Positions 4,211-52,865 of a stretch of DNA of 64,000 nt are shown one piece after another. The translations under genes were made by a program, and so were the position numbers. This stretch comes from Macrostomum lignano (taxonomy: Eukaryota), in contig NIVC01000755.1 in assembly GCA_002269645.1 (NCBI GenBank), forward strand, positions 304,985 to 368,984, in the 5' to 3' direction. Numbering within the stretch: position 1 is the stretch's first letter; each line of letters begins with the position of its first letter. The notes under the pieces are model-generated. The model was not told the origin of the DNA, made no database searches, and saw nothing but the letters and a program-made list of their open reading frames with translations.

Positions 4211-4271
4211 ATGAATATTATTCGAAAACTCGGGAATACCCAACAGTCGAAAAAGAGTGATCCTTCAGATG
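4211..4271 (+). CDS. PRKACA: PKA catalytic subunit, probable coding exon 1 (MNIIRKLGNTQQSKKSDPSD, phase 1)
   Basis: ATG 4211, open for 61 nt, strong donor G|GTGAGT at 4272. Phase 1 fits exon 2 (G|TC AAA = Val-Lys). GNxxxxKKxDP resembles PKA-C N-termini. Confidence 0.75.
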
Positions 4272-5990
4272 GTGAGTATCTGTGAATTTTCAAATAAAAA
4301 TAGAAAACAACCTTTTAAGCTCCAACTATGTCTTGGTGATATACTATACAGTAGTTTATTTCTGTGCTGGGTTTCAGTACTAAAATATGAATGTTTGATT
4401 ATTAGGCTACATTATATATTCTTTAAAAGATACACTTAATTTAATATATATAATATTAATATCCTTAATATGGGTAGAGAAGTTTATATTTGCAAAAAAT
4501 ATATGTAACGAATGCAAAAAAAAATTAAAAGAATAATCTAACAATAAAAAAGAAATAATTTTTTGTTTGCTTATACTCTTTGTCTTAATATTTAATTAAA
4601 ATATTGATTTGAATATTGAATTAGAGATACAATAACATGATATTCAAAAACAAATTTATAGCAAAGCAAAACAAATATACCTGCAATTAAATTATGGTTA
4701 AAAAGGGTTATAAACCTTCAGTTACCATTTTGGCTTTATTTATTTTGCTCAACAAAGAAACTATTTGAAAAAACATGTTATTGTTTGAAAGGTATAGGAA
4801 AAGGCAGAAAAGTTAAAGTAAGAAGGTTTAAAAAGCAAAAATTAAAAAGATATATAATAGTCTATTAAATGTTTAGTTGTCAAATTTATGTATAAAAGAA
4901 AGTTCCTCTAATATAAAAGTATTTTTCTTTATAAAAATATCATCACTGATTACCAAATTAATATTCATAAGGTAATGATTGATCTAGCTATCAATAATAT
5001 GGCATATATATAATAATAATAATAATAAATATTGAACTAATAAAAGTTGTACATTATTGCTATATTTTATTATTACTTTGGTCTTAGAATAACATTGATA
5101 TAAAAGGCAAAAGCAAGTTGCAAGGCATAGGTTATATAAGATCAATTTTAAGATCAGAAAGAACAGGATTGGGATCTTCTTTATTTAGTATTGAAAAAAG
5201 ATAGTTTTTGATATATTGTATTTTATTTAATAGGAAAAAGTAAGACAACATAGAAGAAAAGGCTACAAAACATATATTTACAATAAGATATAGATATATA
5301 TCACTAGAACATCTAGAGATTGGGCCTAAATTAAGGTGTAAATTAATATATTATAGCAGCAATAACATTTTTGGCTAAACATGACATTAGATCAACAAGG
5401 TAAAATTTAAGTGCTAGTATATTAGAGACAAGATAGAATCTAAATCTCAATCTTAAAATCTTATAATCCAAGCAAAAAATGAAGATCTCCTCTACCCATT
5501 CCAAAGAATTTAATCCTGTTTGGCCTTTATATAGTATGCTTACAAGTGTTAGACACATGACTGAGGATTCCAAAATCCTAAAGTCTTCTGATCACTAGGG
5601 TCATATAATCCTAGTTTTTTTAATCTTAGAATGTTCCTGGGATCTTGTAGGTTAGTTTCAGGGTTTCCCAGGATAACCTAGATTTAAAGGCCAAGAAAAT
5701 CCTGGGATCTTAGGATCAACTTCCCTAATGCAAATGGACCACTACCTTCCTGATATAATAGGTCAAACTTCTTGAAACTGCAACTAACTGATTTCAATAG
5801 TAACATTTATGTAAGAGCTATAAGGAATTTTTATGTTTAAATTGACCATCATAGACCTACTCGAACATATGGTGCCCAGTAGGCCCTAAGTTAGAAATTT
5901 CCCACATCTTGAACTCAGTTATAAATAGTTGCTCAAATGATGGTGGCGACAGTGCAACAGTAATCCCCCACCCCATCCCATTTCTCCCAG

Positions 5991-6181
5991 TCAAAGCCTT
6001 TCTGGAGGAGGCCAAGAAGGACTTCCAGGAGAAATGGGACCGGCCGGCCCAGAACACGGCCCAGCTGGACGACTTCGACCGGATCCGCACCCTGGGCACC
6101 GGCAGCTTCGGCCGGGTGATGCTGGTGCAGCACAAGCAGAAGAAGGATTTCTACGCAATGAAGATTCTCGACAAGCAGAAG
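5991..6181 (+). CDS. PRKACA: PKA-C exon 2 ([16 protein letters not shown]...[12 protein letters not shown]...[10 protein letters not shown]): Gly-rich loop and catalytic Lys
   Basis: Acceptor tttctcccag|; GTGSFG motif; 191 nt; ends at KQK with a GC donor (AAG|GCGAGT). Confidence 0.95.
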
Positions 6182-6255
6182 GCGAGTCTGCGACTTTTTG
6201 CATTGATGCTTTGCTGAGGCTTTGATTGACCACCTTTGGTACTTCCTCGATTGCT

Positions 6256-6572
6256 CCATCTTTGCAGTGAGGCAGTTGGTCATCACCCCATCTTTGGAGT
6301 GAGGCAGTTGGTCATCACCCCATATTTGCAGTGAGGCAGTTGGTCATCACCCCATCTTTGTAGTGAGGCAGTTGATCATCACCCCATCTTTGCAGTGAGG
6401 CAGTTGGTCATCACCCCATCTTTGGAGTGAGGCAGTTGGTCATCACCCCATACTTGCAGTGAGGCAGTTGGTCATCACCCCATCTTTGGAGTGAGGCAGT
6501 TGGTCATCACCCCATACTTGCAGTGAGGCAGTTGGTCATCACCCCATCTTTGGAGTGAGGCAGTTGGTCATT
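6256..6572. repeat. 32-bp minisatellite (CCATCTTTGCAGTGAGGCAGTTGGTCATCACC), ~10 copies, PKA intron 2
   Basis: Tandem units read directly. Confidence 0.93.
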
Positions 6573-7664
6573 ATTGCAGTGGGTTGGTCATTGCCCTAGT
6601 CTAGTAGTAAATTCGTCATTATCTCCAAGCCTCTCATCATCATCATCGTAGAGATTTCTGTCTCCAGGTCGCGAGATCGCGAGAAAGCGACAGGGCGACT
6701 CCTCTTTTGTCGCAAGCCGACGGCTGAGGCGGAGTCTAGAAATCCACAGCCAGCAGCCACCGCCCCCCGAGGCTTGAAAGCCTGCAGCGCGACCGGGCCT
6801 TTGACGCTCTGCCCCGCCCCAACCCCCTCCGCTTTCATATCTGCATCGCCCTAATTACAGGAGACTGACCTCGAGCTGATGCAGCGAATATTCTGCATCG
6901 CGTCCTCTTATTTCTCTCCCCCGCTCTTGCCATCCATCCGGCTCTATAATCTTGCCCCCCCTTTGGCCTTGAAGCAGAGTGAAGTCGCCTCTTTAGCTGC
7001 GTCTTGCCAGTTACTTTTTCCCTCCTATAGACTGCTGCCCTGCCGGCTTGCTGCGCCAGCGCTTGGGCAAAAAAACACATTGTTGTTCCCTGCTCGGCTC
7101 TGTTCGAATCTTGCCTGCCCCCGGCCTCAACTGCCGCACAACAACACAGCCTCAACGCAAGATCCAAGCTAAACGAATTACTTGTTGTGCATACTTGACC
7201 CCCCCATCCCAGTGCAAACATTGGCGAGTTTAGCGGAGTCTCAGGGCTGAGCAACTTGCCAGCCAACCCGCCTGCGGAGCTGTTACTGTCGCGCGGTTTT
7301 CTGTTCAAAATTCAAAAAGCCGCGGCTCGCTTTCAGTTTTATCTTTACTTCTAGGCGAGCAAACAGTTTATATGCGTTGAGCTTAATAACTGCTCGATCT
7401 CCAAACATCTGCGCAGTGTTTGCCTTGAGACAGACTAACTTATACATACGAGTGCATATGACGGAGTGTGGGACCATTTAAACGAAGCGCCGTTATATTT
7501 TTGCGCGCCCCACGAGCCAGGGGTTGCAAGATGGAAATTTTATGTAAAAAAACTAACCCCGGTGAGAAATAGTGCTGTTAGTATAGAGCGGATCGGCCCT
7601 GCTGTTTAATGCTCCGTTGCAATAAAGGTCCTGACCTCTTGGCCAGCTTGTAAAACCAAACATT

Positions 7665-8271
7665 TGAGGGTGAGAATGTTTAAGCTGAGATTATCAGCTG
7701 GGTGAGACTGTTTAAGCTGACAGTATCAGCTGGGTGAGACTGTTTAAGCTGAGATTATCAGCTGGGTGAGACTGTTTAAGCTGAGATTATCAGCTGGGTG
7801 AGAATGTTTAAGCTGAGATTATCAGCTGGGTGAGACTGTTTAAGCTGAGATTATCAGCTGGTTGATACTGTCTAAGCTGACATTATCAGCTGGGTGAGAC
7901 TGTCTAAGCTGACATTATCAGCTGGGTGAGACTGTCTAAGCTGACATTATCAGCTGGGTGAGACTGTCTACGCTGAGATTATCAGCTGGGTGAGACTGTC
8001 TAAGCTGAGATTATCAGCTGGGTGAGACTGTTTAGGCTAACATTATCAGCTGGGTGAGACTGTTTAAGCTGACATTATCAGCTGGGTGAGACTGTTTAAG
8101 CTGACATTATCAGCTGGGTGAGACTGTTTGAGCTGAGATTATCAGCTGGGTGAGACTGTTTAAGCTGACATTATCAGCTGACTGAGACTGTCTAAGCTGA
8201 CATTATCAGCTGGGTGAGACTGTTTAAGCTAACATTATCAGCTGGGTGAGACTGTCTAAGCTGAGATTATC
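7665..8271. repeat. 32-bp minisatellite (AGCTGGGTGAGACTGTTTAAGCTGAGATTATC), ~19 copies
   Basis: Tandem units read directly. Confidence 0.93.
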
Positions 8272-9429
8272 AAGCACGATCTTAGACAAAGAGATTCTAA
8301 AGCAGAAATTATTCGACTGAGTGGGGCAGTTCCAGACCAGATGGCACCTACAAAGAGCTGAGGTAGTCAGAGACAGACAGCATTTATGCGAGCAGCAGGC
8401 AGTCTATATTTAGCCGTTTTCTGCTGTCGAAAACTGTGCAAAAACATTCCTTGGAGCTCAAGGAAGCGATGCTAGATAAGAGGCGGCCTGCCACGGCCCC
8501 AGACTCTCCAGCTCTGCATCGCCAGCTCTGTCTGCTCCTCCCACGCCCTCACCCGCCAGCTTCCTGTGGCTGCAGCTCACGCGTTCTCCGAAGCCGGGGC
8601 GCGAGTAGCCTCAAGCTGTCTTACCGGTTACTAAATGGTTGTTGCGAGGCCCGCCTTGCAGATTCCTCTCTCTCTCCTCCCCGCTCACCTCCAGCCCCCC
8701 CCCCGCAGTCGGGAAGCTGCTCGGCTGTTTCTTGTGCTCGCCTCCCCCTTTCGGCGACAAGATGCCGCTTTTCTTACCCAGCCGCAAGCCTCTGTAGCTG
8801 AAATCCCAGCCAGTGAGGCAGCTTCCCCTTATGCTTTCCCATACTTCCTTGACTGACGGAACTCTCTTCTCCAACACCCAAGTCCTGCCTGTATCTCCTC
8901 TCATTCCCGGCTCCGCATGCTAGAGAGTGCGACCGCTGACCGGTCTGACCGATCGACTGGCTGACTGACTGAGCGCCGAGGACACTGGGGGAGGCGGGAG
9001 AGGGAAAGTGCAAAAATGAGAATAATTAAATTGTCTCGCGCCTTCACTCACTCACTCTCCCTTCCCATGCCGCTCCCTCTGAGAGAGCGGATAAGAAATG
9101 AAGGATGAGAAAGAGGACGAACCCGAGTAAAGATGAGGCAGCAAAGAGTCTGGGAAATTAGATTCGCATATATTATATCTATAATAATGAAATATAAAAT
9201 AAGCCTGCAGGCCCGAGGGCCCCGCAATCACGGGCGCTGCTCTGTCGGGCTGAGCGCGTGCCTGGCCTGCGTTGATCTCTCAACTCGCCGCGATGTCAAA
9301 ATGCAGGCGGCCTTCACTATTCATTCTATTCCCAGCTCTCTCGCGCTGCTTGGGGAATAACTTATTAGCTATCTTTTCCGGCAGGGATTTTTGTGGGATT
9401 AATTATTTGTTGGGAATTTCTGATAAAAC

Positions 9430-9520
<91 letters not shown>

Positions 9521-9538
9521 GCCTGCCTGCCTGTCTGC

Positions 9539-9627
<89 letters not shown>
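9430..9627. repeat. (TCTG)n microsatellite
   Basis: Direct reading. Confidence 0.97.
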
Positions 9628-9728
9628 AACAGGGAAAATGTTTATGCCTCGCAAAGCAAGGCTATTTCAATTGCCTTACCGTAAAGTATATATTAAAAAC
9701 AGCGAGATCCATGACTCGAATGCCGCAG

Positions 9729-9827
9729 GTCGTGAAGCTGAAGCAGATCGAGCACACGCTGAACGAGAAGCGAATCCTGCAGGCGATCAGCTTTCCGTTC
9801 CTGGTGCGGCTCGACTATCATTTCAAG
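9729..9827 (+). CDS. PRKACA: PKA-C exon 3 ([33 protein letters not shown]), alphaC helix
   Basis: ccgcag| acceptor, |GTGAGC donor, 99 nt, near-canonical PKA sequence. Confidence 0.97.
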
Positions 9828-9929
9828 GTGAGCTGCGAGGCACCTGGGCGCCTCTCTGATTTCTATATCTGCCTGTATATTAGCTGACATTCGAGGGTCA
9901 CGACAATAACAAACATTCTCGATCCGCAG

Positions 9930-10012
9930 GACAACAGCAACCTCTACATGGTGCTGGAATTCGTTAACGGAGGCGAGATGTTCTCCCACCTGCGCCGTAT
10001 TGGACGATTCAG
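9930..10012 (+). CDS. PRKACA: PKA-C exon 4 ([28 protein letters not shown]), hinge
   Basis: ccgcag| acceptor, AG|GTACGC donor, 83 nt, ends in phase 2. Confidence 0.97.
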
Positions 10013-10044
10013 GTACGCAATGCATTGGCTGAGGCATTGGCTTT

Positions 10045-12392
10045 GTGCTTGTGGTGTTCTGTGCTTGTGGTGGTCTGTGCTTGTGGTGTTCTGTGCTTGT
10101 GGTGTTCTGTGCTTGTGGTGTTCTGTGCTTGTGGTGTTCTGTGCTTGTGGTGTTCTGTGCTTGTGGTGTTCTGTGCTTGTGGTGTTCTGTGCTTGTGGTG
10201 TTCTGTGCTTGTGGTGGTCTGTGCTTGTGGTGTTCTGTGCTTGTGGTGTTCTGTGCTTGTGGTGGTCTGTGCTTGTGGTGTTCTGTGCTTGTGGTGTTCT
10301 GTGCTTGTGGTGTTCTGTGCTTGTGGTGTTCTGTGCTTGTGGTGTTCTGTGCTTGTGGTGGTCTGTGCTTGTGGTGTTCTGTGCTTGTGGTGTTCTGTGC
10401 TTGTGGTGGTCTGTGCTTGTGGTGTTCTGTGCTTGTGGTGGTCTGTGCTTGTGGTGTTCTGTGCTTGTGGTGTTCTGTGCTTGTGGTGTTCTGTGCTTGT
10501 GATGTTCTGTGCTTGTGGTGTTCTGTGCTTGTGGTGTTCTGTGCTTGTGGTGTTCTGTGCTTGTGGTGGTCTGTGCTTGTGGTGTTCTGTGCTTGTGGTG
10601 TTCTGTGCTTGTGGTGTTCTGTGCTTGTGGTGTTCTGTGCTTGTGGTGTTCTGTGCTTGTGGTGTTCTGTGCTTGTGGTGTTCTGTGCTTGTGGTGTTCT
10701 GTGCTTGTGGTGTTCTGTGCTTGTGATGTTCTGTGCTTGTGGTGTTCTGTGCTTGTGATGTTCTGTGCTTGTGGTGGTCTGTGCTTGTGGTGTTCTGTGC
10801 TTGTGGTGTTCTGTGCTTGTGATGTTCTGTGCTTGTGGTGTTCTGTGCTTGTGGTGTTCTGTGCTTGTGATGTTCTGTGCTTGTGGTGTTCTGTGCTTGT
10901 GGTGTTCTGTGCTTGTGGTGTTCTGTGCTTGTGGTGTTCTGTGCTTGTGGTGGTCTGTGCTTGTGGTGTTCTGTGCTTGTGGTGGTCTGTGCTTGTGGTG
11001 TTCTGTGCTTGTGATGTTCTGTGCTTGTGATGTTCTGTGCTTGTGGTGTTCTGTGCTTGTGGTGTTCTGTGCTTGTGGTGTTCTGTGCTTGTGGTGTTCT
11101 GTGCTTGTGGTGTTCTGTGCTTGTGGTGGTCTGTGCTTGTGGTGTTCTGTGCTTGTGATGTTCTGTGCTTGTGGTGTTCTGTGCTTGTGGTGTTCTGTGC
11201 TTGTGATGTTCTGTGCTTGTGGTGTTCTGTGCTTGTGGTGTTCTGTGCTTGTGGTTTTCTGTGCTTGTGGTGTTCTGTGCTTGTGGTGGTCTGTGCTTGT
11301 GGTGTTCTGTGCTTGTGGTGTTCTGTGCTTGTGGTGGTCTGTGCTTGTTGTGTTCTGTGCTTGTGATGTTCTGTGCTTGTGGTGTTCTGTGCTTGTGGTG
11401 TTCTGTGCTTGTGGTTTTCTGTGCTTGTGGTGTTCTGTGCTTGTGGTGTTCTGTGCTTGTGGTGTTCTGTGCTTGTGGTGGTCTGTGCTTGTGGTGTTCT
11501 GTGCTTGTGATGTTCTGTGCTTGTGGTGTTCTGTGCTTGTGGTGTTCTGTGCTTGTGGTTTTCTGTGCTTGTGGTGTTCTGTGCTTGTGGTGGTCTGTGC
11601 TTGTGGTGTTCTGTGCTTGTGGTGTTCTGTGCTTGTGGTGGTCTGTGCTTGTGGTGTTCTGTGCTTGTGATGTTCTGTGCTTGTGGTGTTCTGTGCTTGT
11701 GGTGTTCTGTGCTTGTGGTGGTCTGTGCTTGTGGTGTTCTGTGCTTGTGGTGTTCTGTGCTTGTGGTGTTCTGTGCTTGTGGTGGTCTGTGCTTGTGGTG
11801 TTCTGTGCTTGTGATGTTCTGTGCTTGTGGTGTTCTGTGCTTGTGGTGTTCTGTGCTTGTGGTGTTCTGTGCTTGTGGTGTTCTGTGCTTGTGGTGTTCT
11901 GTGCTTGTGGTTTTCTGTGCTTGTGGTGTTCTGTGCTTGTGGTGTTCTGTGCTTGTGGTGTTCTGTGCTTGTGGTGGTCTGTGCTTGTGGTGTTCTGTGC
12001 TTGTGATGTTCTGTGCTTGTGGTGTTCTGTGCTTGTGGTGTTCTGTGCTTGTGGTTTTCTGTGCTTGTGGTGTTCTGTGCTTGTGGTGGTCTGTGCTTGT
12101 GGTGTTCTGTGCTTGTGGTGTTCTGTGCTTGTGGTGGTCTGTGCTTGTGGTGTTCTGTGCTTGTGATGTTCTGTGCTTGTGATGTTCTGTGCTTGTGGTG
12201 TTCTGTGCTTGTGGTGTTCTGTGCTTGTGGTGTTCTGTGCTTGTGGTGTTCTGTGCTTGTGGTGTTCTGTGCTTGTGGTGTTCTGTGCTTGTGGTGGTCT
12301 GTGCTTGTGGTGTTCTGTGCTTGTGATGTTCTGTGCTTGTGGTTTTCTGTGCTTGTGGTGTTCTGTGCTTGTGATGTTCTGTGCTTGTGATG
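10045..12392. repeat. 16-bp minisatellite (GTGCTTGTGGTGTTCT), ~147 copies, filling PKA intron 4
   Basis: Direct reading; source of the spurious HKHRTPQAQ / CACGVLCL ORFs. Confidence 0.98.
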
Positions 12393-12590
12393 CTCCTCTT
12401 TCGGCTGCTCAATCGTCAAACCTTTTGAGATTTGTTGTTCCATAATGGCAAATGAGGAGAAGTCTGCTTTTCTCCTGTTTTTTATCTCTCAAGTGCAGTA
12501 GTTAGTGACGCCATAATCTCTTTGTGAAATGTCATTCAGCTCTGCTGGTTTCATCAATCAACCTGTTAATTATTCGCTCACGTATTCCAG

Positions 12591-12717
12591 CGAGGACGTA
12601 TCCCGCCTGTACGGGGCCCAAATTGTGCTGGCGTTTGAGTACCTGCACCATCTGGACTTGGTGTACAGGGATCTCAAGCCAGAGAATATTCTCATTAACG
12701 CTGATGGATTTCTTAAG
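12591..12717 (+). CDS. PRKACA: PKA-C alternative exon 5A ([43 protein letters not shown])
   Basis: tattccag| acceptor, AAG|GTTTAT donor, 127 nt, intact YRDLKPEN, same phases as 5B. Confidence 0.88.
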
Positions 12718-12924
12718 GTTTATTTGTTTTAATTTACTCTTTCCAAGAATCGGAGCCGTTTTTGTAACCTAGAAATTTTGCCGCTACAGATTACCAAATT
12801 TTATCGAGGGTTGCGTTTGTTTAAAAATTTTCATCACCCTCTCCTGATTGCATTTGGCTCACCGGCTTTGCTTCTCAATTTAATATTCCCTTCGAGCGCT
12901 AAGCACAGGCTTGAGTCATTCATC

Positions 12925-13745
12925 TAGTCTGCCATCTTGATAATTTGGTGGCTTTGACCTGGGATGACCCCAAAGAGTGTGATCTAATCTGCCATCTTGA
13001 TAATTTGGTGGTCTTGACCCGGGATGACCCCAAAGAGTGTGATCTAATCTGCCATCTTGATAATTTGGTGACCTTGACCGGGATGACCCCAAAGAGTGTG
13101 ATCTAATCTGCCATCTTGATAATTTGGTGGTCTTGACCCGGGATGACCCCAAAGAGTGTGATCTAATCTGCCATCTTGATAATTTGGTGACCTTGACCGG
13201 GATGACCCCAAAGAGTGTGATCTAATCTGCCATCTTGATAATTTGGTGGCCTTGACCCGGGATGACCCCAAAGAGTGTGATCTAATCTGCTAGCCTGATA
13301 TTTTGGTGACCTTGACCCGAGATGACCCCAAAGAGTGTGATCTAATCTCCTAGCCTGATATTTTGGTGACCTTGACCCGAGATGACCCCAAAGAGTGTGA
13401 TCTAATCTGCTCCTGATATTTTGGTGACCTTGACCCGAGATGACCCCAAAGAGTGTGATCTAATCTGCCATCTTGATAATTTGGTGACCTTGACCGGGAT
13501 GACCCCAAAGAGTGTGATCTAATCTGCCATCTTGATAATTTGGTGGCCTTGACCCGGGATGACCCCAAAGAGTGTGATCTAATCTGCCATCTTGATAATT
13601 TGGTGGCCTTGACCCGGGATGACCCCAAAGAGTGTGATCTAATCTGCCATCTTGATAATTTGGTGACCTTGACCGGGATGACCCCAAAGAGTGTGATCTA
13701 ATCTGCTAGCCTGATATTTTGGTGACCTTGTCCCGAGATGACCCC
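12925..13745. repeat. ~60-bp minisatellite (GATGACCCCAAAGAGTGTGATCTAATCTGCCATCTTGATAATTTGGTGACCTTGACC...), ~14 copies, between exons 5A and 5B
   Basis: Period of 59-60 nt read directly. Confidence 0.93.
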
Positions 13746-14375
13746 AAGGACTGCTGGTTTGATCTGTTATCTTGAAACTTACATTGACCTTGACCCGATA
13801 TGACCTGAGTCGCCCTGACACTCGTTGACCGTGACCCTAGTTGACTCCTGTATTCGAATCCATCCGTATGGAGTCCGTGACCCAATTTAAACCTGCACTT
13901 TTGACTTGTCTGAGTCGGTCCGAAGCGCCCCCCCCAGCCATGGTGCCGCCTTGTCAGTGCGAGAAGGAAGCAGTTCACAATTTTTGCCATCTCACACCGG
14001 CTGCATAATCGCTGATTTGCTTTCGATTGCTTAATCAGAATCTAAAGAATAACAATCTCTCCACTCTCAGTACCAGCCTTAAATAAGAAGCTTTGATTTT
14101 TAACAGGGTTGCAGTTTTTCTAATTCAATAATATTATAGAGCTTGTTCGTCACAGGACAACCCTGACAAATTGGCATTGCTTATTAATAATCATTTACCT
14201 TTGTTTATCACAAAATTGCATACCCTTTCACGAGCTGAGAGGCTTCAGTTACTTATCTATTTGGATTTTGTTTTGTCATTTGTCATTAGATTTTCCATAG
14301 CGCTTACTGTAAGTAGTGTCTATGTGAAAGAGTTACTGAGAGCTCAAGTGTCACCCCCCTGTCACATGCTGTTAG

Positions 14376-14502
14376 CGAGCCGCACTCGAGGTTCTACGGT
14401 GCTCAAATCGTGCTCGGTTTCGAGTACCTGCACAGCTTAGACCTGATTTATCGGGATCTGAAGCCTGAGAATCTGCTGATCGATAGCACCGGCTACATCA
14501 AA
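14376..14502 (+). CDS. PRKACA: PKA-C alternative exon 5B ([43 protein letters not shown]), canonical-type
   Basis: ctgttag| acceptor, AAA|GTAAGG donor, 127 nt, close to canonical SEPHARFYAAQIVL... Confidence 0.95.
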
Positions 14503-14784
14503 GTAAGGCAGCACCTCCCGGCTCGCCTGAGCCCCCCCCCCCTGCATAGCCTCTTCTGTTGTGACCTGTCTGCTTTAACCTGGCCTGATGTTAGCTTAGA
14601 CCACTCTGGCATACTGAATTGTTTGATTGAAGGCGGCTAAATGCTCAGATTTTGTTGCATAGCACAATATGCATATTGATTTCTTCTCACTAATAATTCC
14701 ATGTAAAACTTACCCAATACATGTAGAATAGTTTTAGTGTCCCTGGCAGTGACATGGTGCTACCGCTCCTGAGGCTGTTGCCCC

Positions 14785-15220
14785 CTCAAATAAAATGGCG
14801 CCCCCTCAAATGGCGCCCCCTCAATTGAAATGGCGCCCGCCCCCAATTTAAATAGCGCCCCCCCAATTGAAATAGCGCCCACTCAATTGAAATGGCGCCC
14901 CCTCAATTGAAATGGCGCCCCATCAATTGAAATGGCGCCCCCTCAATTAAAATGGCGCCCCCTCAATTGAAATAACGCCCCCTCAATTGAAATGGCGCCC
15001 CCATTGAAATGGCGCCCCCTCAATTGAAATGGCGCCCCCAATTGAAATAGCGCCCCCCCAATTGAAATGGCGCCCCCTCAATTGAAATGGCGCCCCCTCA
15101 ATTGAAATGGCGCCCCCTCAATTAAAATGGCGCCCCCTCAATTAAAATGGCGCCCCCTCAATTGAAATGGCACCCCCTCAATTGAAATGGTGTCCCCTCA
15201 TATAAAATGGCGCCCCCTCA
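14785..15220. repeat. ~21-bp minisatellite (AATTGAAATGGCGCCCCCTC)
   Basis: Direct reading. Confidence 0.9.
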
Positions 15221-15774
15221 AAGACGCGGCCCCCTTATACTAGAGTCTTTATTGCTTGTAATTAGAATTTTTAGGATCAGTTGGTAAGGATTACCTGGGC
15301 AAGAGTTTTGCAATGCCTAATGTTCAGAAAATTCAGTTGCCGCACTCAAATTTCTATATTTGTTTAAGAATTCTTGTCCACCTTCTTTTTGTTTAAACCT
15401 ACGCATGACGGCTTGGTCTATCTCTGTATCTGTCGTAGTTGTTTTAGAACGTCTATATGCCAAAAAGGCCGTCCTGTTGCCCCAGCTGCTCCTTATTAAA
15501 GTTACTTCAATTTCCATTCGACTGCATAGCTTAACTTAAAGTTTTAACTCGAATTAGAGAACTCGAATGTGCCTGATTTTCAGCCAATATTTATTATTTA
15601 TGATTGATTAATTGTTGTTCACACTTCAGTCCGTTTGTCATTAAGCATGCGATGACAACACACTGTCCTGTCTGTAGTTGATTTGCCCACTATATAGATG
15701 TGTCATTGCTACAGAAGCACTTATAGACTTCTTTATCTATAGCCACAGAACCGAAAATAATTGACAGATTTTAA

Positions 15775-15933
<159 letters not shown>

Positions 15934-16019
15934 TAATCTCTGGGGTTATCTTTGAAATCGCTTGGATTGAATCGTTAAATATACAAACTTCAGCATCCTA
16001 AATAGTGCTTAAAGTCACC

Positions 16020-16190
16020 CATACAATCGTCTGTAAATCGCCTTGACAATCGTCTGTAAATCGCCCCGATAATCGTCTGTAAACCGCCCTGAGAATCGTC
16101 TGTAAATCGCCCCGATAATCGTCTGTAAATCGCCCCGATAATCGTCTGTTAATCGCCCCGACAATCGTCCTAAAAATCGCCCTGAGCCGC
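16020..16190. repeat. ~23-bp minisatellite (AATCGTCTGTAAATCGCCCCGAT)
   Basis: Direct reading, ~7 copies. Confidence 0.85.
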
Positions 16191-16260
16191 CCCAAAACCG
16201 ATTTTTTCTGAAGTTCAGAGAATTACTTACCTTGCTCTTCGCTTCATCATGGTCTACTAA

Positions 16261-16611
<351 letters not shown>

Positions 16612-16670
16612 TGAAGATTATCGAATTTTTTCTCGCATGGCACAAAAAATTAGCATTATCTAGTTGTACC

Positions 16671-17546
16671 CTAGCCAATCAGAATGATTTTGATGTGTCC
16701 TAGCCAATCAGAAGGATCGAGATAGTTCCTAGCCAATCAGAATGATTTTGATGTGTCCTGGCGAATCAGAAGGATCGAGATAGTTCCTAGCCAATCAGAA
16801 TGATTTTGATGTGTCCTAGCCAATCAGAAGGATCGAGATAGTTCCTAGCCAATCAGAAGGATCCAAATGTGTCCTGGCCAATCAGAATGACCCAGATGTG
16901 TCCTGGCCAATCAGAAGGATCCAAATGTGTCCTGGCGAATCAGAAGGATCCAAATGTGTCCTGGCCAATCAGAATGACCCAGATGTGTCCTGGCCAATCA
17001 GAAGGATCCAAATGTGTCCTGGCGAATCAGAAGGATCCAAATGTGTCCTGGCCAATCAGAAGGATCGAGATAGTTCCTAGCCAATCAGAATGATTTTGAT
17101 GTGTCCTAGCCAATCAAAAGGATTCAAATCTGTCCTGGCCAATCAGAATGATCCAGATGTGTCCTGGCCAGTCAGAAGGATCGAGATAGTTCCTAGCCAA
17201 TCAGAATGATTGTGATGTGTCCTGGCGAATCAGTAGGATCGAGATAGTTCCTAGCCAATCAAAAGGATCCAAATGTGTCCTGGCGAATCAGAAGGATCCA
17301 AATTTGTCCTGGCCAATCAGAAGGATCGAGATAGTTCCTAGCCAATCAGAATGACTTGATGTGTCCTAGCCAATCAGAAGGATCGAGATAGTTCCTAGCC
17401 AATCAGAAGGATCCAAATGTGTCCTGGCCAATCAGAATGACCCAGATGTGTCCTGGCCAATCAGAAGGATCCAAATGTGTCCTGGCCAATCAGAAAGATC
17501 CAGATAGTTCATAGCCAATCAGAAGGATCCAACTGAGCCAATCAGA
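16671..17546. repeat. 29-bp minisatellite containing (A/G)GCCAATCAG, ~30 copies, last PKA intron
   Basis: Unit GTCCTGGCCAATCAGAAGGATCCAAATGT and variants. Confidence 0.93.
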
Positions 17547-17591
17547 ACTCAGTATCTAACTAACCTCGCTGACCCGCTCTTTGCACCCCAG

Positions 17592-17733
17592 GTGTACAAA
17601 AAAAGAGGTGGAGGCGCCGTTCGTGCCCAAGTCGAAGGGCCCGGGCGACCCGTCCAACTTCGACGAATACGAAGAGGAGCCGCTGCGGATCGCCAGCTCG
17701 GAGAAGTGCGCCAAGGAGTTCGCCGAATTTTGA
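17592..17733 (+). CDS. PRKACA: PKA-C last exon ([46 protein letters not shown]), needing a -1 correction in the A7 run at 17598-17604
   Basis: caccccag| acceptor; AGC C-tail FDEYEEE and FxxF end in the frame starting at 17605; TGA at 17731-17733. Full protein ~356 aa. Confidence 0.9.
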
Positions 17734-19146: not shown

Positions 19147-20800
19147 CAGTCAAATTGTCACTCATTGTCAGCAGTCAAACTGTCAGCAAGTTGTCAGCAG
19201 TCAAATTGTCACTGATTGTCAGCAGTCAAATTGTCAGCAGTCAAATTGTCACTGATTGTCAGCAGTCAAACTGTCAGCAGTCAAATTGTCAGCAGTCAAA
19301 TTGTCACTGATTGTCAGCAGTCAAACTGTCAGCAGTCAAATTGTCACTGATTGTCAGCAGTCAAATTGTCACTGATTGTCAGCAGTCAAATTGTCACTGA
19401 TTGTCAGCAGTCAAATTGTCAGCAAGTTGTCAGCAGTCAAACTGTCAGCAAATTGTCAGCAGTCGAATTGTCAGCAAATTGTCAGCAGTCAAATTGTCAG
19501 CAGTCAAATTGTCACTGATTGTCAGCAGTCAAACTGTCAGCAGTCAAATTGTCAGCAGTCAAATTGTCACTGATTGTCAGCAGTCAAATTGTCAGCAGTC
19601 AAATTGTCACTGATTGTCAGCAGTCAAACTGTCAGCAGTCAAATTTTCAGCAGTCAAATTGTCACTGATTGTCAGCAGTCAAATTGTCACTGATTGTCAG
19701 CAGTCAAATTGTCACTGATTGTCAGCAGTCAAACTGTCAGCAGTCAAATTGTCAGCAGTCAAATTGTCACTGATTGTCAGCAGTCAAATTGTCACTGATT
19801 GTCAGCAGTCAAATTGTCACTGATTGTCAGCAGTCAAATTGTCACTGATTGTCAGCAGTCAAATTGTCAGCAGTCAAATTGTCACTGATTGTCAGCAGTC
19901 AAATTGTCACTGATTGTCAGCAGTCAAATTGTCACTGATTGTCAGCAGTCAAATTGTCAGCAGTCAAATTGTCACTGATTGTCAGCAGTCAAATTGTCAA
20001 CAGTCGAATTGTCACTGATTGTCAGCAGTCAAATTGTCAGCAGTCAAATTGTCAGCAGTCAAATTGTCAGCAGTCAAATTGTCAGCAGTCAAATTGTCAC
20101 TGATTGTCAGCAGTCAAATTGTCAGCAGTCAAATTGTCAGCAGTCAAATTGTCAGCAGTCAAATTGTCACTGATTGTCAGCAGTCAAATTGTCACTGATT
20201 GTCAGCAGTCAAATTGTCACTGATTGTCAGCAGTCAAATTGTCAGCAGTCAAATTGTCAGCAGTCAAATTGTCACTGATTGTCAGCAGTCAAATTGTCAG
20301 CAGTCAAATTGTCACTGATTGTCAGCAGTCAAATTGTCAGCAGTCAAATTGTCAGCAGTCAAATTGTCAGCAGTCAAATTGTCACTGATTGTCAGCAGTC
20401 AAACTGTCAGCAGTCAAATTGTCACTGATTGTCAGCAGTCAAATTGTCAGCAGTCAAATTGTCAGCAGTCAAATTGTCACTGATTGTCAGCAGTCAAATT
20501 GTCACTGATTGTCAGCAGTCAAATTGTCACTGATTGTCAGCAGTCAAATTGTCAGCAAGTTGTCAGCAGTCAAACTGTCAGCAAATTGTCAGCAGTCGAA
20601 TTGTCAGCAAATTGTCAGCAGTCAAATATTGTCAGCAGTCGAATTGTCAGCAAATTGTCAGCAGTCAAATATTGTCAGCAGTCGAATTGTCAGCAAATTT
20701 TCTGCAGTCTAAATATTGCCAGCGGTCGAGTTGTCAGCAAATTGTCAGCAGTAAAATGACTGGCAGTCAAATTGTCAGCAGTCAAATTGTCAGCAGTCGA
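19147..20800. repeat. Composite minisatellite of 15-bp (TGTCAGCAGTCAAAT) and 10-bp (TGTCACTGAT) modules
   Basis: Direct reading. Confidence 0.95.
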
Positions 20801-22090
20801 ATGCTAAAAATGTTAATCCCAAGATTATTTTTCCTACTCATAGAGTCAAAGTTCACTAACAATAACTTGCGACAGTAACTTGAATTCATTCATTGAAAAG
20901 TCCGGAAAGCTGTTGTTTTGGTCTAGACTTCAGATTTAAGCCTGCAATCCTGAGATTGGCCAAATTCCGGGATTAAATCCCGGGATCGCAAAAAACGGGA
21001 TTTTGCTATATATATTTAGGCCTGAAAACTAAAAAGTAAATATAAAAATGTTCCTCATTAATTTCACATTCCCAACTCCCTAATGCTGTTTAGTGACTTT
21101 GAAACTTGCTGTACAGGTGCAAATTCAGAGAAGCGGAACATGATTTAAGTCATAACTAATTAATTTCGAATCGCGCACCGTTTGCCTGCCTGCGGTGCTC
21201 GGTGTAGCAAGTTAGCAACACATCGCCTGTAATTATTTGGCTTTGCCATTCCTGTATCTTCAATTAATTTTCTAATATAATATAAGTAGAACAAATCCAC
21301 ATGTTCTCGTTAATTATAAATTTCTACGCTATAGTGTCATAAAGTTTACCGAATCGTTTTTATGGCTTGCTAAATAAAATTGCGTCTTTGTTCAGCCTTA
21401 GTTTGCATGAATTGGGACAAAGCCTTCCGTTTTAGATAAATCACTCGGGCGCCTTGATTTGTTTGAATGCTTAAGCGTACAGGGGGTCCTTTGGAATGGT
21501 GTGAGTTGGGGTGGGTGGTGGTGGTGTGACTGCTTGGCTGGTTGGCACTGTGGGGGGTCTCGGGGGGGGGCGACTGAACGATTAAACCAAACCACAACCT
21601 TTTAACTTTGAGGCGGGGCGGGAAGAGGGGTTGAGATTTTATTGCCTTCTTTGTTAACAAGTCACGACAGGACCATTCCACGCTTTGCGTGATGGGCCCG
21701 AACTTTTCCTTATCTGTTTCAACTGTTGGTTCTAAAAATTAATTTGCTAACATGTTTCTCTAAGTTTGTAAGATTTAGCTTATAGTCTGGATAAAATTCT
21801 TTAGCAAAAAAGGCAGCTCAAGTGCAATAGAAGCAGCTGTACACATTAACAAAACAAATTTTCTGTCTACTCTTGCTTTGGGGAGGTCTGGGCTTTTCTG
21901 GGTCAAGTGATGTTAAATGATTCAGATATTGTAAATGTGACAATTATACAAATTCAGATTCCTGGCCGAAGCCAAATTTTGCATTTTGATATCCTGCTGA
22001 GATTTTTAATTGCTTCAAAATTTCACTTTATTGGAAATTGGAGTTTTTTTATTAACGAACTGCAAAACGATTAACATCAAGATATAAAAC

Positions 22091-22265
22091 AAGCACAGCA
22101 CAGCACATCATATCACAGCACATCACATGCTGTGACCTGTGACTGTGATGTGCTGTGCTGTGATGTGATGTTCTGTGCTGTGCTGTGCTGTGCTGTGCTT
22201 TGCTGTGCTGTGCTGTGCTGTGCTGTGCTGTGCTGTGCTGTGCTATTGCTTTGCTGTGATGTGCT
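22091..22265. repeat. (TGTGC)n pentamer tract with an inverted (GCACA)n left arm
   Basis: Direct reading. Confidence 0.85.
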
Positions 22266-23226
22266 GTGGCAGCTCGTTTCTAATTCTAATCCTGTTTCTA
22301 CTTCATGTATATCAAACAGACGCCAGCCAGATCCTAAAAAAGAACAATGAGTTGAATTGAAATGAAGAGGAAAATAGTGAAACAAAATTTGCTGCACCTA
22401 AATATGAATATGAAGATAAGAAAAAAAGTGAACGAAATAACGTCCACTTAGACCACTATCTTCTGTTTAATTATACGAGTGGATTTTGTGACCTGTGAGG
22501 GCAGATAAATGTACAGCAAGGCAAGCTAGAACTCTGCAGAGGGCCAGGGGCATAGCGACTTTCAATTACAAGTTGATGTGATGTGAGTGTTAAGACCTGG
22601 CAAAAGACAAAGTAAAATGTCTAACAAGCATGATAACTCGAAAACATACGACAATGTGTACTTTTTGTAGAATCAAGAAATTTGCAATTGCAATGATAAA
22701 CTCATTGCGAGATATCCTTCTCCATTAAAACTTTAGCAATTAATCAGACAAAGTTGAAGAGCTTGCCATTCTACTACCAGTAGGCTGTATTGAAAAAATT
22801 GGCAAATTTAAATCGGTAGCATCTTGAATTCTTCCGCTCAGCCAATCACCTACCGGGGGAGGGGGGAGGCACGGATTGATTGGTGGGTAAACCTTGACTT
22901 AAACCTTGGAGTTTTCTCAATTCACTCCTATTCCATCCACCCTGCTGTGCTCTGCCCGTAGTAGCAAAACTCTAGCAATTAATCATTTGTCAAGCAGCAT
23001 TTTTTTGTTCAATTATGTCAGAATTTCCATACGAAATCGAGCTGCAGCTGCAGCTGCTGTTTCTGGCTTTGCAGAAGGACAGGTAAATGACTCGGTTTAT
23101 ATTCCATGATATGAGTAGAATCGAATCAATACCAGGTGTTTAGTAACTGTCATATTGGCAGTGTAAATGACAACTACAAATGTATGTAGTCTATAGAGTG
23201 CAGATTTTGGCTTTAACAACTTTGAC

Positions 23227-25005: not shown

Positions 25006-25454
25006 CCACCTTGATCTAGATAAGCTGCGAGGTTAAATTTTAAAGCAAATACTTTTCTTGCTACTGCAAGTAGCAAGTATTGTAAATGAAGTGTTTGCAT
25101 GTATTTGATACGAGCTAAATGTGCATTTAGTGAACGATAAATGAAAATCGAGAAGCAAGCTCAGCTGAGTAACGCAGCTCGTAATACAAAAGCGAGATAA
25201 AATCTACTTAATGAAATGATGGGTGTCGGTTTGCTAAACTCGCTGCACACTCGTAGACTTGACGACTGGACTGGGCTGTACCAGCAAACGATAGCAGTTG
25301 CCCCAGTTGGTGGGATTCCCCATTCTCGGTTGGTGCGATTCTAATGAATTTTTATTGAGTTTTTTTACAGGATTCGTTTTTGCAATTTGTAAAGCATAGC
25401 ATAGGAAGCTTCCAGTGCGGAACCGCGCAACCATTAAAAAATAGACAGCTGATG

Positions 25455-25785
25455 AGATTCTGTCAGAGATTCTGTCAGAGATTATGTCAGGGATTCTGTC
25501 AGGGATTATGTCAGGGATTCTGTCAGGGATTCTGTCAGGGATTCTGTCAGGGATTCTGTAAGGGATTCTGTCAGGAATTCTGTCAGGGATTCGGTCAGGG
25601 ATTCTGTCAGGGATTCTGTCAGGAATTCTGTCAGGGATTCTGTCAGGGATTCTGTCAGGGATTCTGTCAGGGATTCTGTCAGGGATTCTGTAAGGGATTC
25701 TGTCAGGGATTCTGTCAGGGATTCTGTCAGGGATTCTGTCAGGGATTCTGTCAGGGATTCTGTCAGGGATTCTGTCAGGGATTCT
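25455..25785. repeat. 12-bp minisatellite (GGGATTCTGTCA)
   Basis: Direct reading. Confidence 0.95.
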
Positions 25786-25829
25786 TTCCTCACTCACACC
25801 CACTAATCGCAGAAGCGGTCACACCGCTT

Positions 25830-26924
25830 TCACATCTGCTTGTCCATATCGAAAGTGACTCGGCCGCGACCAGCGCCAACCATTGGCAGCAGCGGCAGCG
25901 CGGCCTTCTCAGCAACCTCGGCGGTCGCAGACGAAGCCGACGTGGAGGCCGTCATTCCTTGCTGTCTGTGCAGATGTAGCGGAGGCCGCGGCGGCAGCGT
26001 GTTGACCAGGTCGGTGCCAGCGTCCATATTGACGTGAATCTCCAACGTGCGGATCTGGCCGTTGCCCTGCTGCTGAGCTGCCGCTGCCGGCTCCTCTTTG
26101 TCCCCGCCGACCCCAGCGCCGCCACCGTCGAGCCGGAGGCTTTTCTCCATCCGCTTCCGACGGACGTCGTAGCCGCAGAGAGCCACCGCCAGAGCAAAGT
26201 GACAGCCGGCGAAGACGAACAGCAGCGAGTAGGTGACGACCTGGTGCAGCTGCTTGCGGGCGGCGATGGCCTCGAGCAGGTCGGCAATGCAGTTGTCCTT
26301 GTGGAAGGCGAGCGCCAGACCCGGCGGCGGCTGTCGCTTTTCCCTTCTTCCAGGCGTCGCTGATGCTGTCGTGTGGTTGCACAGCCGCGGCAGGCGCCGG
26401 TCCAGCTTCCGGCAGCTGGCGAGGCCATCGCGGAACGGCCGGAAGCAGCTGAGACCTGGCCGCGAGCTGTCCAGTGTTGGACGGCCGGCGCAGGTCGCGT
26501 CCAGCGCCTCCCCCAGCTGCTCGCGCAGGTGATCATCGATGCGCACAGTCTGGTCGAAGGCGACCATGTAGCCGGCCAGGACGGACTCGCCGCACAGGCC
26601 GACCAGGAGGAAAACGCCCAGCGCCTTCGGGCTCTGGCAGCAGCAGGAGCAGAAGATGCTCAGCCAGACCAGGGAGACAACAAAGAACGGCACGGCCGCC
26701 TTCAGGCAGGGGTCTCGCTCCAAGAAGGAGGCGCAGCCGCCGAGCTGGCGGGTGCAGACCAGGTAGCCGATGCCGCTGGCCCCGCTCTGGGCGGCGGTGA
26801 GGCCCAGCAGGCCGCAGAGCAGGCCGGCCAGGCAGTGCCAGCTGCGCCTGTAGCGGCTGACCTGCGGCCGGCTGGGCGAGGCCCGCGGCAGCTGCAGGAT
26901 GCTGTCCACTAGGCAGCAGCACAT
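25830..26924 (-). CDS. Intronless four-transmembrane, divergent tetraspanin-like protein (~364 aa)
   Basis: GC3-rich 1.1-kb ORF with ATG at 26924. Four hydrophobic segments with tetraspanin-like spacing (CSCCC after TM2, Glu in TM3, Cys-containing loop ending KDNCIADL before TM4); no CCG motif. Family assignment is tentative. Confidence 0.65.
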   Translation of the reverse strand: MCCCLVDSILQLPRASPSRPQVSRYRRSWHCLAGLLCGLLGLTAAQSGASGIGYLVCTRQLGGCASFLERDPCLKAAVPFFVVSLVWLSIFCSCCCQSPKALGVFLLVGLCGESVLAGYMVAFDQTVRIDDHLREQLGEALDATCAGRPTLDSSRPGLSCFRPFRDGLASCRKLDRRLPRLCNHTTASATPGRREKRQPPPGLALAFHKDNCIADLLEAIAARKQLHQVVTYSLLFVFAGCHFALAVALCGYDVRRKRMEKSLRLDGGGAGVGGDKEEPAAAAQQQGNGQIRTLEIHVNMDAGTDLVNTLPPRPPLHLHRQQGMTASTSASSATAEVAEKAALPLLPMVGAGRGRVTFDMDKQM

Positions 26925-27074
26925 GGCGGCGGAGCGCCTGCGCAACGGCGGGATGGGAAGTCGCGACGTTTATGATGGAGCTGACTTGTTAAGCTGTACA
27001 TGGCTGTCTAGAACGTTCCCATAGACGTAAAAAACAATCTCGTAAATTTTTTGCATCATTGGAAACAAAAGTTT

Positions 27075-27400: not shown

Positions 27401-29504
27401 TGTAAGGCACCAAGAAGACTGAGCATCCTAGTAGGAGGTTCGATACCTCTACTAGCCAATTTAATCTACTTGAAATGTCTTCTCATACTCTGGTCCAACC
27501 AGAGAAATTCTTGTTTTTTCTGTATCTAGTTGGAGATTTGCACTCAGAGGTTTAGAATCAGAATTTGGTGCTCAGAAACGATAAAAGTGCACATAATTGA
27601 GACTTCCGCTCCGGCTGCAGGCTTTGGCAGCCGAGTTTTGAGCAGCTGGCGCAACTCACTGGCTGATGAATGCCTTGTAGCTTCGTGTGTGCCGCTGCGG
27701 CTGCTGCTGCAAGTGCTCCGCCGCCTCGGCCTGACCATTGTCAGGTAGGAACTGTAAGTCAGCGCCGTTGCTAAGGTTACCGGTATTAGAGCCAATTAGC
27801 AGCCGCCGCCGCTGCTGCTCTGCCGCGCTGTCCAAAGTGAACACCGCTGACGGCTTTGTCATCCGCGGTGCCGGGGAGCGGCGCTCTGCCCTGCCCAGCT
27901 CGCGGCAGTTTTGTTGCAAAGTTATCCCGCTGGCCGGTCCAGAGCGGGGCAGAGCGAGGGGACGGGGGGGCAGCTCGCTTTGAGCAGAAGAGAGCGGAGC
28001 GGCGTTGCAATTGGGATTTTAGCAGTGAGTGAATAAGGGGAGATCTGCCGGGTTACTGGGAGTGGCTGGCGCGAGCTCTGTCATAAATAATCCAGGACTG
28101 GGTCGGGATTGGGGAAGGGGAACAGACGGGAAGATTCTCCCCTCCCCTCGCCGATCCCCATCTCGTCTCTGCTCCGCAACGGCCAAACTGCAGCGGATTG
28201 CCGCCTGCGACGCCCCCGCTTTCAGCCACCGCCGCCGCTTCCACCTCTCCGCCGCCTTTACTTTTTCCTTTTTCCCCATCTCTTCTCCCGGCTGCTTGCC
28301 GGGCTGAGGGGGGGGGGTGGGCAAGTTTCGGGAGGCCACGGGAATCGGTCAGAAATGAGCTGAATGAGGAATGGGAGCGTAAAATGGGAGCGGGGGAGTT
28401 GGGGGGCGCATCTCCAGCCCGGCGGCGAGTTTGACCTGCCGTGGCTCTGGTCCCAATCCTGTCGCCTTGTACTTTCCGACATCGCAACTCGCGGGGGGCA
28501 GGCCTAATTATTAGCAAATATAATTTTCCACTTGTTGCCGGGCATGAATGAATAATTATCCCGCACTAAATTATGGGCAGGGAGTAGCAACAGCCCGTGT
28601 TCTCGGCGCAAATTCTATAAGACAAGAGCCATGCTGAACTCGCGAGCTGGCGTTCAACTTGAGCACTGAATAACTGAAGGAAGGCCTGCCCTGCTCCCGT
28701 GTGTCTCTGTAGAAAGCGAACAGCGCTTGAAAGCTAAGAGAAAGTGAAGGCTTGAAGGAGACAGAGCAAACTAGTACAAGTGGGGGGTCTATAGCCTGCC
28801 TTTCTGCTCAGCATTGGGGAAAACTTGACCCAACAAGCCATTCGCCTGTGTCGTCAAAGTCAAACTTTGCGGTGACCGATTCCTCTTGCACTCCACTGCA
28901 ACGCCTGCCTGACAAGTCTACCCCTTGATCCGGGCTTCTGTCAGCCCTAACTCTGCCTCTGCCCCGGATTTGGGTGCACTAATTGAGTGCCAGACTGACA
29001 GGCAGACAGACAGCAGGCAGTTTGCGTTCAGGGACCAAATTGACTGCTGACGGAAGCCTCTAACGACAGGCGGGGTTGCCGTGGGAGGTTCGGAGAGTAA
29101 TTAGCCGCCTGGGCTGCCTAATGCGCCGCTGGATTTGCCGACAGCAGCGCGGCCTAATCTGATCGACGTCAATGGGAGCGCTCGACACTTGTGCAGGCAA
29201 AGGCACACAGGCCATCCGCACGCCTCATCGATGGGCTGTAGGCGATAAGTAGACTCAGGATGCAGGGTGGAGGCTGCGAGACTCATGCAAGGCGAATAAT
29301 TCGATTTCATCATCTCCTACTAAATTGGGTCTAACCACGCTTTGAACCTCTGTCAACCAGACCCTTTGTGCATCGGTGCTATGTTTCGTTTGTAACCCAT
29401 ACCCCGCGGCCCAAAACATAAACAAACCGAAAATACATAAATCTCCGTCGAAGACAGGAACTCCTCCTTAAACAAAATTGGTGTTGGACTTTTAGCGGCT
29501 TTCA

Positions 29505-30218: not shown

Positions 30219-30499
30219 CTCCGCAGATTTCAACGCCCAACACGCCGACTACTTGCAGAAAAAGTGCAACAAAGTTTCCTATAAAAATATTACTCTGCAT
30301 CTGCTGCTGAAATTCTATACACCGGAAGCGGCTCTCGCCTTGGCATCAAATATACGAGCTGGTAATTTCCGAGCTCAGCAACTTCGGAAAAATCCGATTG
30401 GTTGCTACACCCGGGATCTGGAGGAATTATTTTAGACAAGATCGAGTTGCCAATTATTATGCTAATGAGCTGCTGCTGCGTGGCCAAGATTTGCATGCC

Positions 30500-51334: not shown

Positions 51335-52865
<1,531 letters not shown>

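Follow-up and report, generated by a model that had tools for sequence, protein, structure and literature searches.

A probable pair of mutually exclusive exons for the catalytic-loop segment of protein kinase A in the flatworm Macrostomum lignano

Introduction

Can a gene that encodes the protein kinase A catalytic subunit (PKA-C) vary its catalytic core by choosing between two copies of a single exon? This question is raised by a locus of the flatworm Macrostomum lignano, where a PKA-C gene on the + strand (coding sequence 4211-17733) lies within the 64,000-nucleotide stretch of DNA that we analysed as a whole (the window; contig NIVC01000755.1, positions 304,985 to 368,984 of the forward strand, assembly GCA_002269645.1). 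The exon for the catalytic loop is present there in two versions, a divergent one (5A) followed by a canonical one (5B), which we consider likely to be a tandem-duplicated, mutually exclusive pair. The gene can thus probably make two slightly different enzymes. A preliminary description made from the letters of this DNA had recognised a lophotrochozoan PKA-C gene, and this was correct, the animal being a flatworm and not a mollusc.

In the vertebrate genes PRKACA and PRKACB, the catalytic-loop segment is encoded by a single exon. Duplicated, mutually exclusive exons inside a kinase domain are familiar from JNK (MAPK8/9/10), where exons 6a and 6b give isozymes with altered substrate handling, although that pair belongs to another kinase family and another subdomain and arose by an unrelated duplication. 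In frame-enforced mutually exclusive exons, double inclusion or skipping shifts the reading frame, and the resulting products are removed by nonsense-mediated decay. For molluscs, Beushausen and colleagues (Neuron 1:853, 1988) reportedly described two internal cassettes covering about residues 142-183 in the PKA-C of Aplysia californica. Recent papers on PKA-C evolution and on mussel isoforms discuss 5' exons only, and a paper on schistosome PKA-C discusses N-terminal splicing and leaves these exons unmentioned. Vertebrate PKA-C isoform diversity arises from alternative first exons and not from the catalytic core (PMC5526564).

Results

Two tandem exons for the catalytic-loop segment

Exons 5A (12591-12717) and 5B (14376-14502) are each 127 nt long, preceded by AG and followed by GT, and identical in phase: the first base, C, completes a Ser codon begun by AG from exon 4, and the remaining bases make up 42 whole codons, up to the codon boundary at which the exon closes. 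Each cassette encodes residues 140-181 (numbered throughout as in bovine/human C-alpha), that is, helix alphaE, the catalytic loop YRDLKPEN and beta7-beta8. The two differ at 12 of 42 residues (30/42 identical) and agree at 79 of 127 nucleotides, and Y164, D166, K168, E170 and N171 are identical in both. When the 64 kb were searched by tblastn with human C-alpha, 5A was recovered with E 2.5e-14 and 5B with E 1.1e-19, and no third copy of the cassette was found. These E-values, together with the recurrence of the same pair in two paralogous loci, indicated that the pair is not a product of chance.

The reading frame makes the number of included cassettes decisive. When 5A is joined to 5B, translation ends 31 codons into 5B at a stop that precedes the last exon junction by 403 nt, and skipping both leads to a stop at once (directly after ...GRFR), 365 nt upstream of that junction. 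Since 127 nt is not a multiple of 3 and early stops follow from both or neither, only single inclusion is productive, and mRNAs with both cassettes or neither would be expected, from the usual rule, to be lost to nonsense-mediated decay. The pair resembles the frame-enforced class in its length and in early stops lying over 350 nt 5' of the last junction, with nonsense-mediated decay only cleaning up.

Most of this had been anticipated. The two 127-nt exons of the preliminary description, with their coordinates, AG/GT borders and common phase, were exact; its 12 differing residues agreed with our translations, its flanking junctions (exon 4 donor after 10012, exon 6 acceptor before 15805) were recovered, its statement that both or neither shifts the frame was borne out by the stops computed for each case, and its remark that 5A keeps the catalytic residues held for all five positions named above. 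It had rightly placed the segment from alphaE through YRDLKPEN, but had ended it at beta7, and the segment runs on into beta8.

With either cassette, the product is 356 aa long once one A is removed from a run in exon 8 that is treated below. It contains a full Pkinase domain (Pfam Pkinase, E 9.2e-72), and the repaired A isoform aligned end to end with mammalian C-alpha PDB chains (phmmer, E 1.6e-198, residues 7-356 versus 4-354). Both isoforms carry the catalytic loop with YRDLKPEN from the cassette, while TDFG and APE come from exon 6. The best full-length matches of the gene product were M. lignano proteins with 93% identity, and a UniRef fragment from M. lignano, P0036, matched the gene exactly, including a stretch from the wrong frame of exon 2.

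The pair in three paralogues and selection on exon A

The same arrangement was found at two further M. lignano loci that are distinct from the window gene, L001 on NIVC01000862.1 and L002 on NIVC01000716.1. At both, an A-type exon is followed by a B-type exon, each 127 nt long and bordered by AG and GT, with an intervening intron of 317 nt in L001 and 355 nt in L002. The corresponding intron of the window gene measures 1658 nt, and the 60-nt tandem repeat within it (12922-13805) accounts for the difference. The introns of the paralogues did not align with one another in blastn, only the exons did.

Nei-Gojobori counts over the three paralogues gave, for A exons compared between paralogues, pS 0.47-0.69, pN 0.11-0.21 and dN/dS 0.09-0.19, and for B exons compared likewise dN/dS 0.02-0.03, while A against B within a gene gave pS 0.80-0.97. 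The synonymous excess among A exons was significant (Fisher p 8e-5 to 2e-8), most of the differences lying at third codon positions, with synonymous sites near saturation. All three A exons share fixed Ile172, Phe179 and Leu180, and each also differs from B at positions 142, 145 and 153. The within-gene pS indicated an old duplication without homogenisation of its copies, and the dN/dS between A exons indicated that these are kept by purifying selection as coding sequence, so that 5A is not a dead duplicate. The preliminary description had argued the same and had named a dN/dS near 1 as the sign of the opposite; its argument is strengthened by the low values and by the retention of the pair in three paralogues. 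On these comparisons, the A/B arrangement predates the divergence of the three M. lignano PKA-C genes.

The A exon of L002 is composite. Its middle third (20281-20323, 43 nt) matches the 5B of the window at 88% identity, as against 72-74% for the other A exons. The outer thirds resemble A, and the A identity thus resides in the first and last thirds. This pattern indicates an old, partial gene conversion in which B sequence replaced the centre of the A exon.

Protein models with either cassette

Protein models in NCBI contain both kinds of cassette. P0124 (BOX15_Mlig002500g1, 356 aa, locus L001) has the A cassette between exons 4 and 6, and P0125 (locus L002) has the B cassette. The Mlig_3_7 annotation from which both models come combines RNA-seq (StringTie/TACO) with a de novo transcriptome (PMC5730564), which implies that an A-only mRNA exists for at least one paralogue. 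Another M. lignano model of L001, P0021 in UniRef, joins exon 6 to exon 8 (…EIILSK/VYKKELEAPF…). Exon 7 (273 nt) is thereby skipped in frame, which may reflect either an error of the model or a genuine transcript without helices alphaF-alphaH.

How one of the two exons would be chosen

Several known ways of enforcing exclusive choice were considered. Steric exclusion requires an intron of at most about 60 nt between the exons and was rejected at lengths of 1658, 317 and 355 nt, in agreement with the preliminary description, which had discarded steric branch-point exclusion. Incompatibility of U2 and U12 sites was rejected as well, all four sites being GT-AG and no donor resembling /RTATCCTT. 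As for docking-site and selector pairings of the Dscam type, blastn between the paralogues detected no conserved intronic elements save one 30-nt match (window 15588-15616 against L002, 90%, E 0.001). Inverted repeats in the introns were at chance level or lay inside minisatellites, and intronic duplex energies showed no consistent excess over shuffled sequences at the three loci. A U-rich enhancer 3' of the weak 5A donor was set aside, because it is present in the window and in L001 and absent in L002, and so is not conserved.

The donors themselves are asymmetric. All three B exons end in the consensus-like AAA/GTAAG, and two of the three A exons end in the weak AAG/GTTT. The pair of Pinctada, described below, has the same asymmetry, with AAA/GTAAG after its canonical exon and AAG/GT-nonconsensus after its divergent one. 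A consensus-like B donor set against a weak A donor suggests that B would be the default exon and A the regulated one. We therefore propose a model in which 5B would be included by default through its GTAAG donor and 5A (GTTTAT) would be included under tissue- or stage-specific control; single-inclusion mRNAs alone would be productive, and all others would be removed by nonsense-mediated decay. The two isozymes would have identical catalytic residues and would differ at the start of alphaE and around the C-spine and the beta7-beta8 hairpin. Such differences would tune kinetics, nucleotide handling or partner binding, and would not switch activity on or off.

Comparison with the molluscan cassettes

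The cassette in RefSeq isoforms and gene models of bivalves is canonical or divergent (…VLVLEYLHHLDIMY…). At the locus of Pinctada imbricata (L004), two tandem exons of 127 nt with a common phase occupy 21745-21871 and 22146-22272; they are separated by 274 nt, and the canonical one comes first. The molluscan precedent that the preliminary description had cited for Aplysia is thus directly confirmed in bivalves by the Pinctada exons and the RefSeq isoform pairs. Echinococcus granulosus (L003) and Helobdella robusta (L005) also conserve the boundaries and phase of the 127-nt exon, but have one copy only.

Three bivalve models, P0126, P0127 and P0128 (from Mytilus coruscus, Pinctada imbricata and Mya arenaria), hold both cassettes in one protein of 390-454 aa, an annotation error that follows from the tandem exons. 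Identical duplicated cassettes in tick, mite and nematode models (P0121, P0207, P0135) were dismissed as model or assembly artefacts.

The pairs in the two phyla are alike in gene family, in the 127-nt exon, its phase and residues 140-181, in having two tandem copies that keep the catalytic residues, and in the stronger donor of the canonical copy. They differ in what was substituted: the molluscan divergent cassettes change AF to VL, Y to H and LI to IM in alphaE, whereas the Macrostomum A exon is altered at 141, 142 and 145 and by L172I, Y179F and I180L. The order is also reversed, divergent then canonical at the three Macrostomum loci and canonical then divergent in Pinctada, and the Macrostomum pair has been carried into at least three paralogous genes. 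In a neighbour-joining tree of 33 cassettes (300 bootstraps; 42 residues each, hence low power), the molluscan divergent cassettes formed a clade of their own with 91% bootstrap support and joined flatworm A in 0/300 replicates, and the flatworm A exons were placed weakly near neodermatan flatworm cassettes and one A-like sequence.

The reversed order, the different substituted positions and the tree favour two independent duplications, although 42 residues cannot settle the matter. We consider the flatworm duplication probably independent of the molluscan one, which affects the same exon. The preliminary description had left the choice between an ancient switch and a convergent duplication undecided, and the tree and the reversed order lean towards independence without closing that choice.

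A-like cassettes outside flatworms

A cassette with A-type residues was also found among two spliced mRNA contigs from unrelated public runs, L006 (ERR1719394) and L007 (SRR8554747), each of which encodes a PKA-C of 350 aa. Their nucleotides are 87-89% identical on either side of the cassette and 67% identical within its 127 nt (CDS 417-543), the cassette being A-like (…QVVL…HHLDLIY…ENILIDGTGFLK) in one contig and canonical in the other. A putative polychaete sequence came closest to them (93.5-93.8%), all other phyla standing at about 90-91%, and PKA-C is too conserved for their taxon to be told by similarity. This closest sequence, a metazoan one with SRIY…ENILID…GFLK, comes from the transcriptome of the gregarine-like parasite Siedleckia, which lives in polychaetes, and presumably represents contamination from the host. 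A third cassette variant (…ENILIDHQGYLK, P0156/P0171 group) was seen in proteins that are 95-98% identical. Together the contigs L006 and L007 would imply that A-like and canonical alternatives coexist in a lineage of marine animals, and they suggest that an A-type alternative cassette, marked by Ile172 and Phe179, occurs outside flatworms, in annelid-like transcripts.

The A7 run in exon 8

Exon 8 reads GTGTAC AAAAAAA GAGGTG, with seven A at 17598-17604. The preliminary description had missed this run, which bears on whether this copy gives a productive mRNA. As assembled, it puts the C-terminal 42 residues out of frame, and reading six A restores a perfect tail. Both paralogues are in frame at the run, and with one A removed the 46 codons 3' of it remain intact and match those of L002 at 97.9% identity. 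Published assemblies of M. lignano rest on PacBio reads and have reported errors that break open reading frames (PMC5730564). Given the intact downstream frame and such assemblies, a long-read homopolymer error is the simpler explanation and the most likely one; if the A7 is real, this copy would be a pseudogene, and a very recent one. An alternative in-frame acceptor for exon 8 (…aaaaagag/GTGGAG, which drops VYKKE) was judged unlikely, having no pyrimidine tract and lying about 15 nt 3' of a strong acceptor.

Gene structure and the rest of the window

The exons of the gene and the repeats that flank 5A are listed in Table 1.

Table 1. Exons of the PKA-C gene and tandem repeats next to exon 5A, in window positions.
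Feature	Position	Strand	Description	Basis
Exon 1, coding part	4211..4271	+	MNIIRKLGNTQQSKKSDPSD and first base of a Val codon; donor gtgagt	tblastn with N-terminus of paralogue P0124, and sequence
Exon 2	5991..6181	+	A-helix, Gly-rich loop, beta3 Lys; donor GC (6182-6183), not GT	
Exon 3	9729..9827	+	99 nt	
Exon 4	9930..10012	+	83 nt; ends ...TTC AG, two bases of the Ser139 codon	
16-nt minisatellite	10044..12389		146.6 copies; most of the intron 5' of 5A	
Exon 5A, divergent cassette	12591..12717	+	127 nt; weak donor AAG/gtttat	
60-nt tandem repeat	12922..13805		14.8 copies, in the 5A-5B intron	
Exon 5B, canonical cassette	14376..14502	+	127 nt; consensus-like donor AAA/gtaagg	
Exon 6	15805..15900	+	96 nt; DFG, activation loop, APE	
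Exon 7	16324..16596	+	273 nt	
Exon 8, coding part	17592..17733	+	C-tail, FAEF, stop TGA 17731-17733; in frame only with A7 (17598-17604) read as A6	

The intron after exon 2 is GC-AG (AAG/gcgagt). The same GC donor occurs in L002 (15526-15527), and L001 has gtgagt there, so the GC-AG intron is conserved with one of the paralogues; the UniRef model P0001 reads through the GC donor and gains two residues (…KQKAS…). At the N-terminus, LGN in the product of exon 1 (MNIIRKLGNTQQSKKSDPSD) aligns to the MGN start of mammalian C-alpha, with six residues added upstream. The ancestral start Met having been replaced, the Gly is not at position 2, and no N-myristoylation is possible at that glycine. This type of N-terminus is common to L001 (MLMITIIRKLGN…), and L002 has another short one (MEDFFK…).

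The introns after exons 4, 5A, 5B, 6 and 7 each hold a different minisatellite (10044-12389, 16 nt x 147; 12922-13805, 60 nt x 15; 14780-15221, 20 nt x 22; 16023-16182, 23 nt x 7; 16670-17531, 29 nt x 30). Other tandem arrays of the window lie, for example, at about 1525-2148, 25234-25979, 29353-30300, 45468-46116, 51156-53137 and 60212-60938, and these arrays fit the 15% of simple and tandem repeats reported for the genome. Outside the PKA-C gene, an unbroken open reading frame of 181 aa on the - strand (32902-33447) encodes a small GTPase of the Arf family (Pfam Arf, E 2.5e-52), by eye like ARL6/BBS3 and apparently an intronless gene. A second - strand open reading frame of 371 aa (25830-26945), with hydrophobic stretches and without a Pfam match, adjoins tandem repeats and is a putative gene only.

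Discussion

Selection on exon A, its retention in three paralogues and the frame constraint argue for a mutually exclusive pair in which each cassette is used as coding sequence. A number of observations weigh against this. In a collection of 5.8 billion sequences, searched with exon 4-5A-exon 6 queries of 89, 135 and 336 aa, we found no protein in which the window's own 5A is joined to exons 4 and 6, a search that apparently returned only proteins of 0.8-1.75 times the query length and so possibly missed shorter fragments; the only model found of the window gene, P0036, uses 5B and is poor. The intron blastn, the inverted-repeat scan and the duplex energies revealed no splicing regulator sites or conserved intronic RNA pairings. 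The A7 of exon 8 as assembled is a +1 frameshift after VYKK that removes the essential C-tail, including FxxF. The identity of A is not inviolable, the central third of the L002 A exon having been converted by a B exon, and the cassette trees rest on 42 residues and give the flatworm A clade 36% support. That 5A is used in this copy would accordingly be argued from selection and from a paralogue, and this is the main weakness of the case.

These observations bear most directly on the idea that silencing struck 5A or the entire copy so recently that the unused exon or pseudogene still looks intact. Besides the A7 run and a sole model that uses 5B, the weak GTTTAT donor and the introns swollen by minisatellites speak for it. 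5A has, however, no stop or indel and keeps all the A-specific residues common to the paralogues, the codons past the A7 are intact and nearly identical to those of L002 once one A is removed, a homopolymer error is the simpler account in assemblies reported to break reading frames, and the A exon of a paralogue is present in a transcript-derived protein; we regard silencing as improbable. The early stop of an A+B mRNA and the weak 5A donor would also suit a 5A that acts mainly as a 'poison' exon, lowering PKA-C output when included with 5B. Such an exon needs no conservation of its protein, yet A has a dN/dS far below 1 and fixed A-specific residues in frame, and a full-length A-only protein has been annotated from transcripts, which makes this role very improbable. 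That the pair is an assembly artefact, for instance haplotypes or paralogues stitched in tandem, is hardly credible: M. lignano assemblies are indeed redundant and repeat-rich (PMC5730564), and the identical cassettes in some tick, mite and nematode models do look artefactual, but 38% of bases differ between 5A and 5B, whose synonymous sites are saturated, and the same A-then-B order occurs at three loci on separate contigs with unrelated introns. A mutually exclusive pair, with both cassettes coding, remains the reading that we prefer.

The origin of the pair is less firmly placed. One early spiralian duplication could underlie both the flatworm and the molluscan pairs, with the pair later lost among cestodes, leeches and other animals. 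Flatworms and molluscs alike have duplicated exactly this 127-nt exon, with no difference in phase, the canonical AAA/GTAAG and divergent AAG/GT-nonconsensus donors correspond, and A-like cassettes with Ile172 and Phe179 also occur in annelid-like transcripts. Against a single event stand the reversed order of canonical and divergent exons, the other positions altered in the molluscan divergent cassettes and their failure to join flatworm A in any replicate, and the single exon of Echinococcus and Helobdella, so that we think it unlikely. It is tentatively conceivable, though we lean against it, that the A-type cassette (Ile172, Phe179 and often a changed beginning of alphaE) is an old spiralian alternative exon, different from the molluscan cassette and common to flatworms and annelid-like animals; the contigs L006 and L007 and the putative polychaete sequence hint at this. 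Independent duplication in flatworms and molluscs is the origin that we favour.

Alternative cassettes in molluscan PKA-C were known already. What is new is a flatworm instance, in three paralogues and probably of independent origin. For annotation the gain is modest, in that PKA-C models often pick one cassette arbitrarily or fuse both, as P0126-P0128 do. PKA-C is a textbook kinase whose core is usually taken as invariant, with isoform diversity at the N-terminus, and selection for an alternatively spliced catalytic-loop segment in a second phylum would mean that the core itself is a recurrent target of isoform tuning. The pair also constitutes a natural experiment of 12 substitutions, including the C-spine residue L172I and the beta7-beta8 hairpin, in an animal amenable to transgenesis (PMC5730564). 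Should the flatworm duplication have arisen separately from the molluscan one, it would be a clean case of convergent exon duplication, and if the A-type cassette is an old spiralian exon, at least two independent duplications would have struck the same exon, and each resulting pair would have been retained over hundreds of millions of years. Were this true, a 'tunable catalytic core' would have evolved repeatedly in a kinase that ranks among the most conserved.

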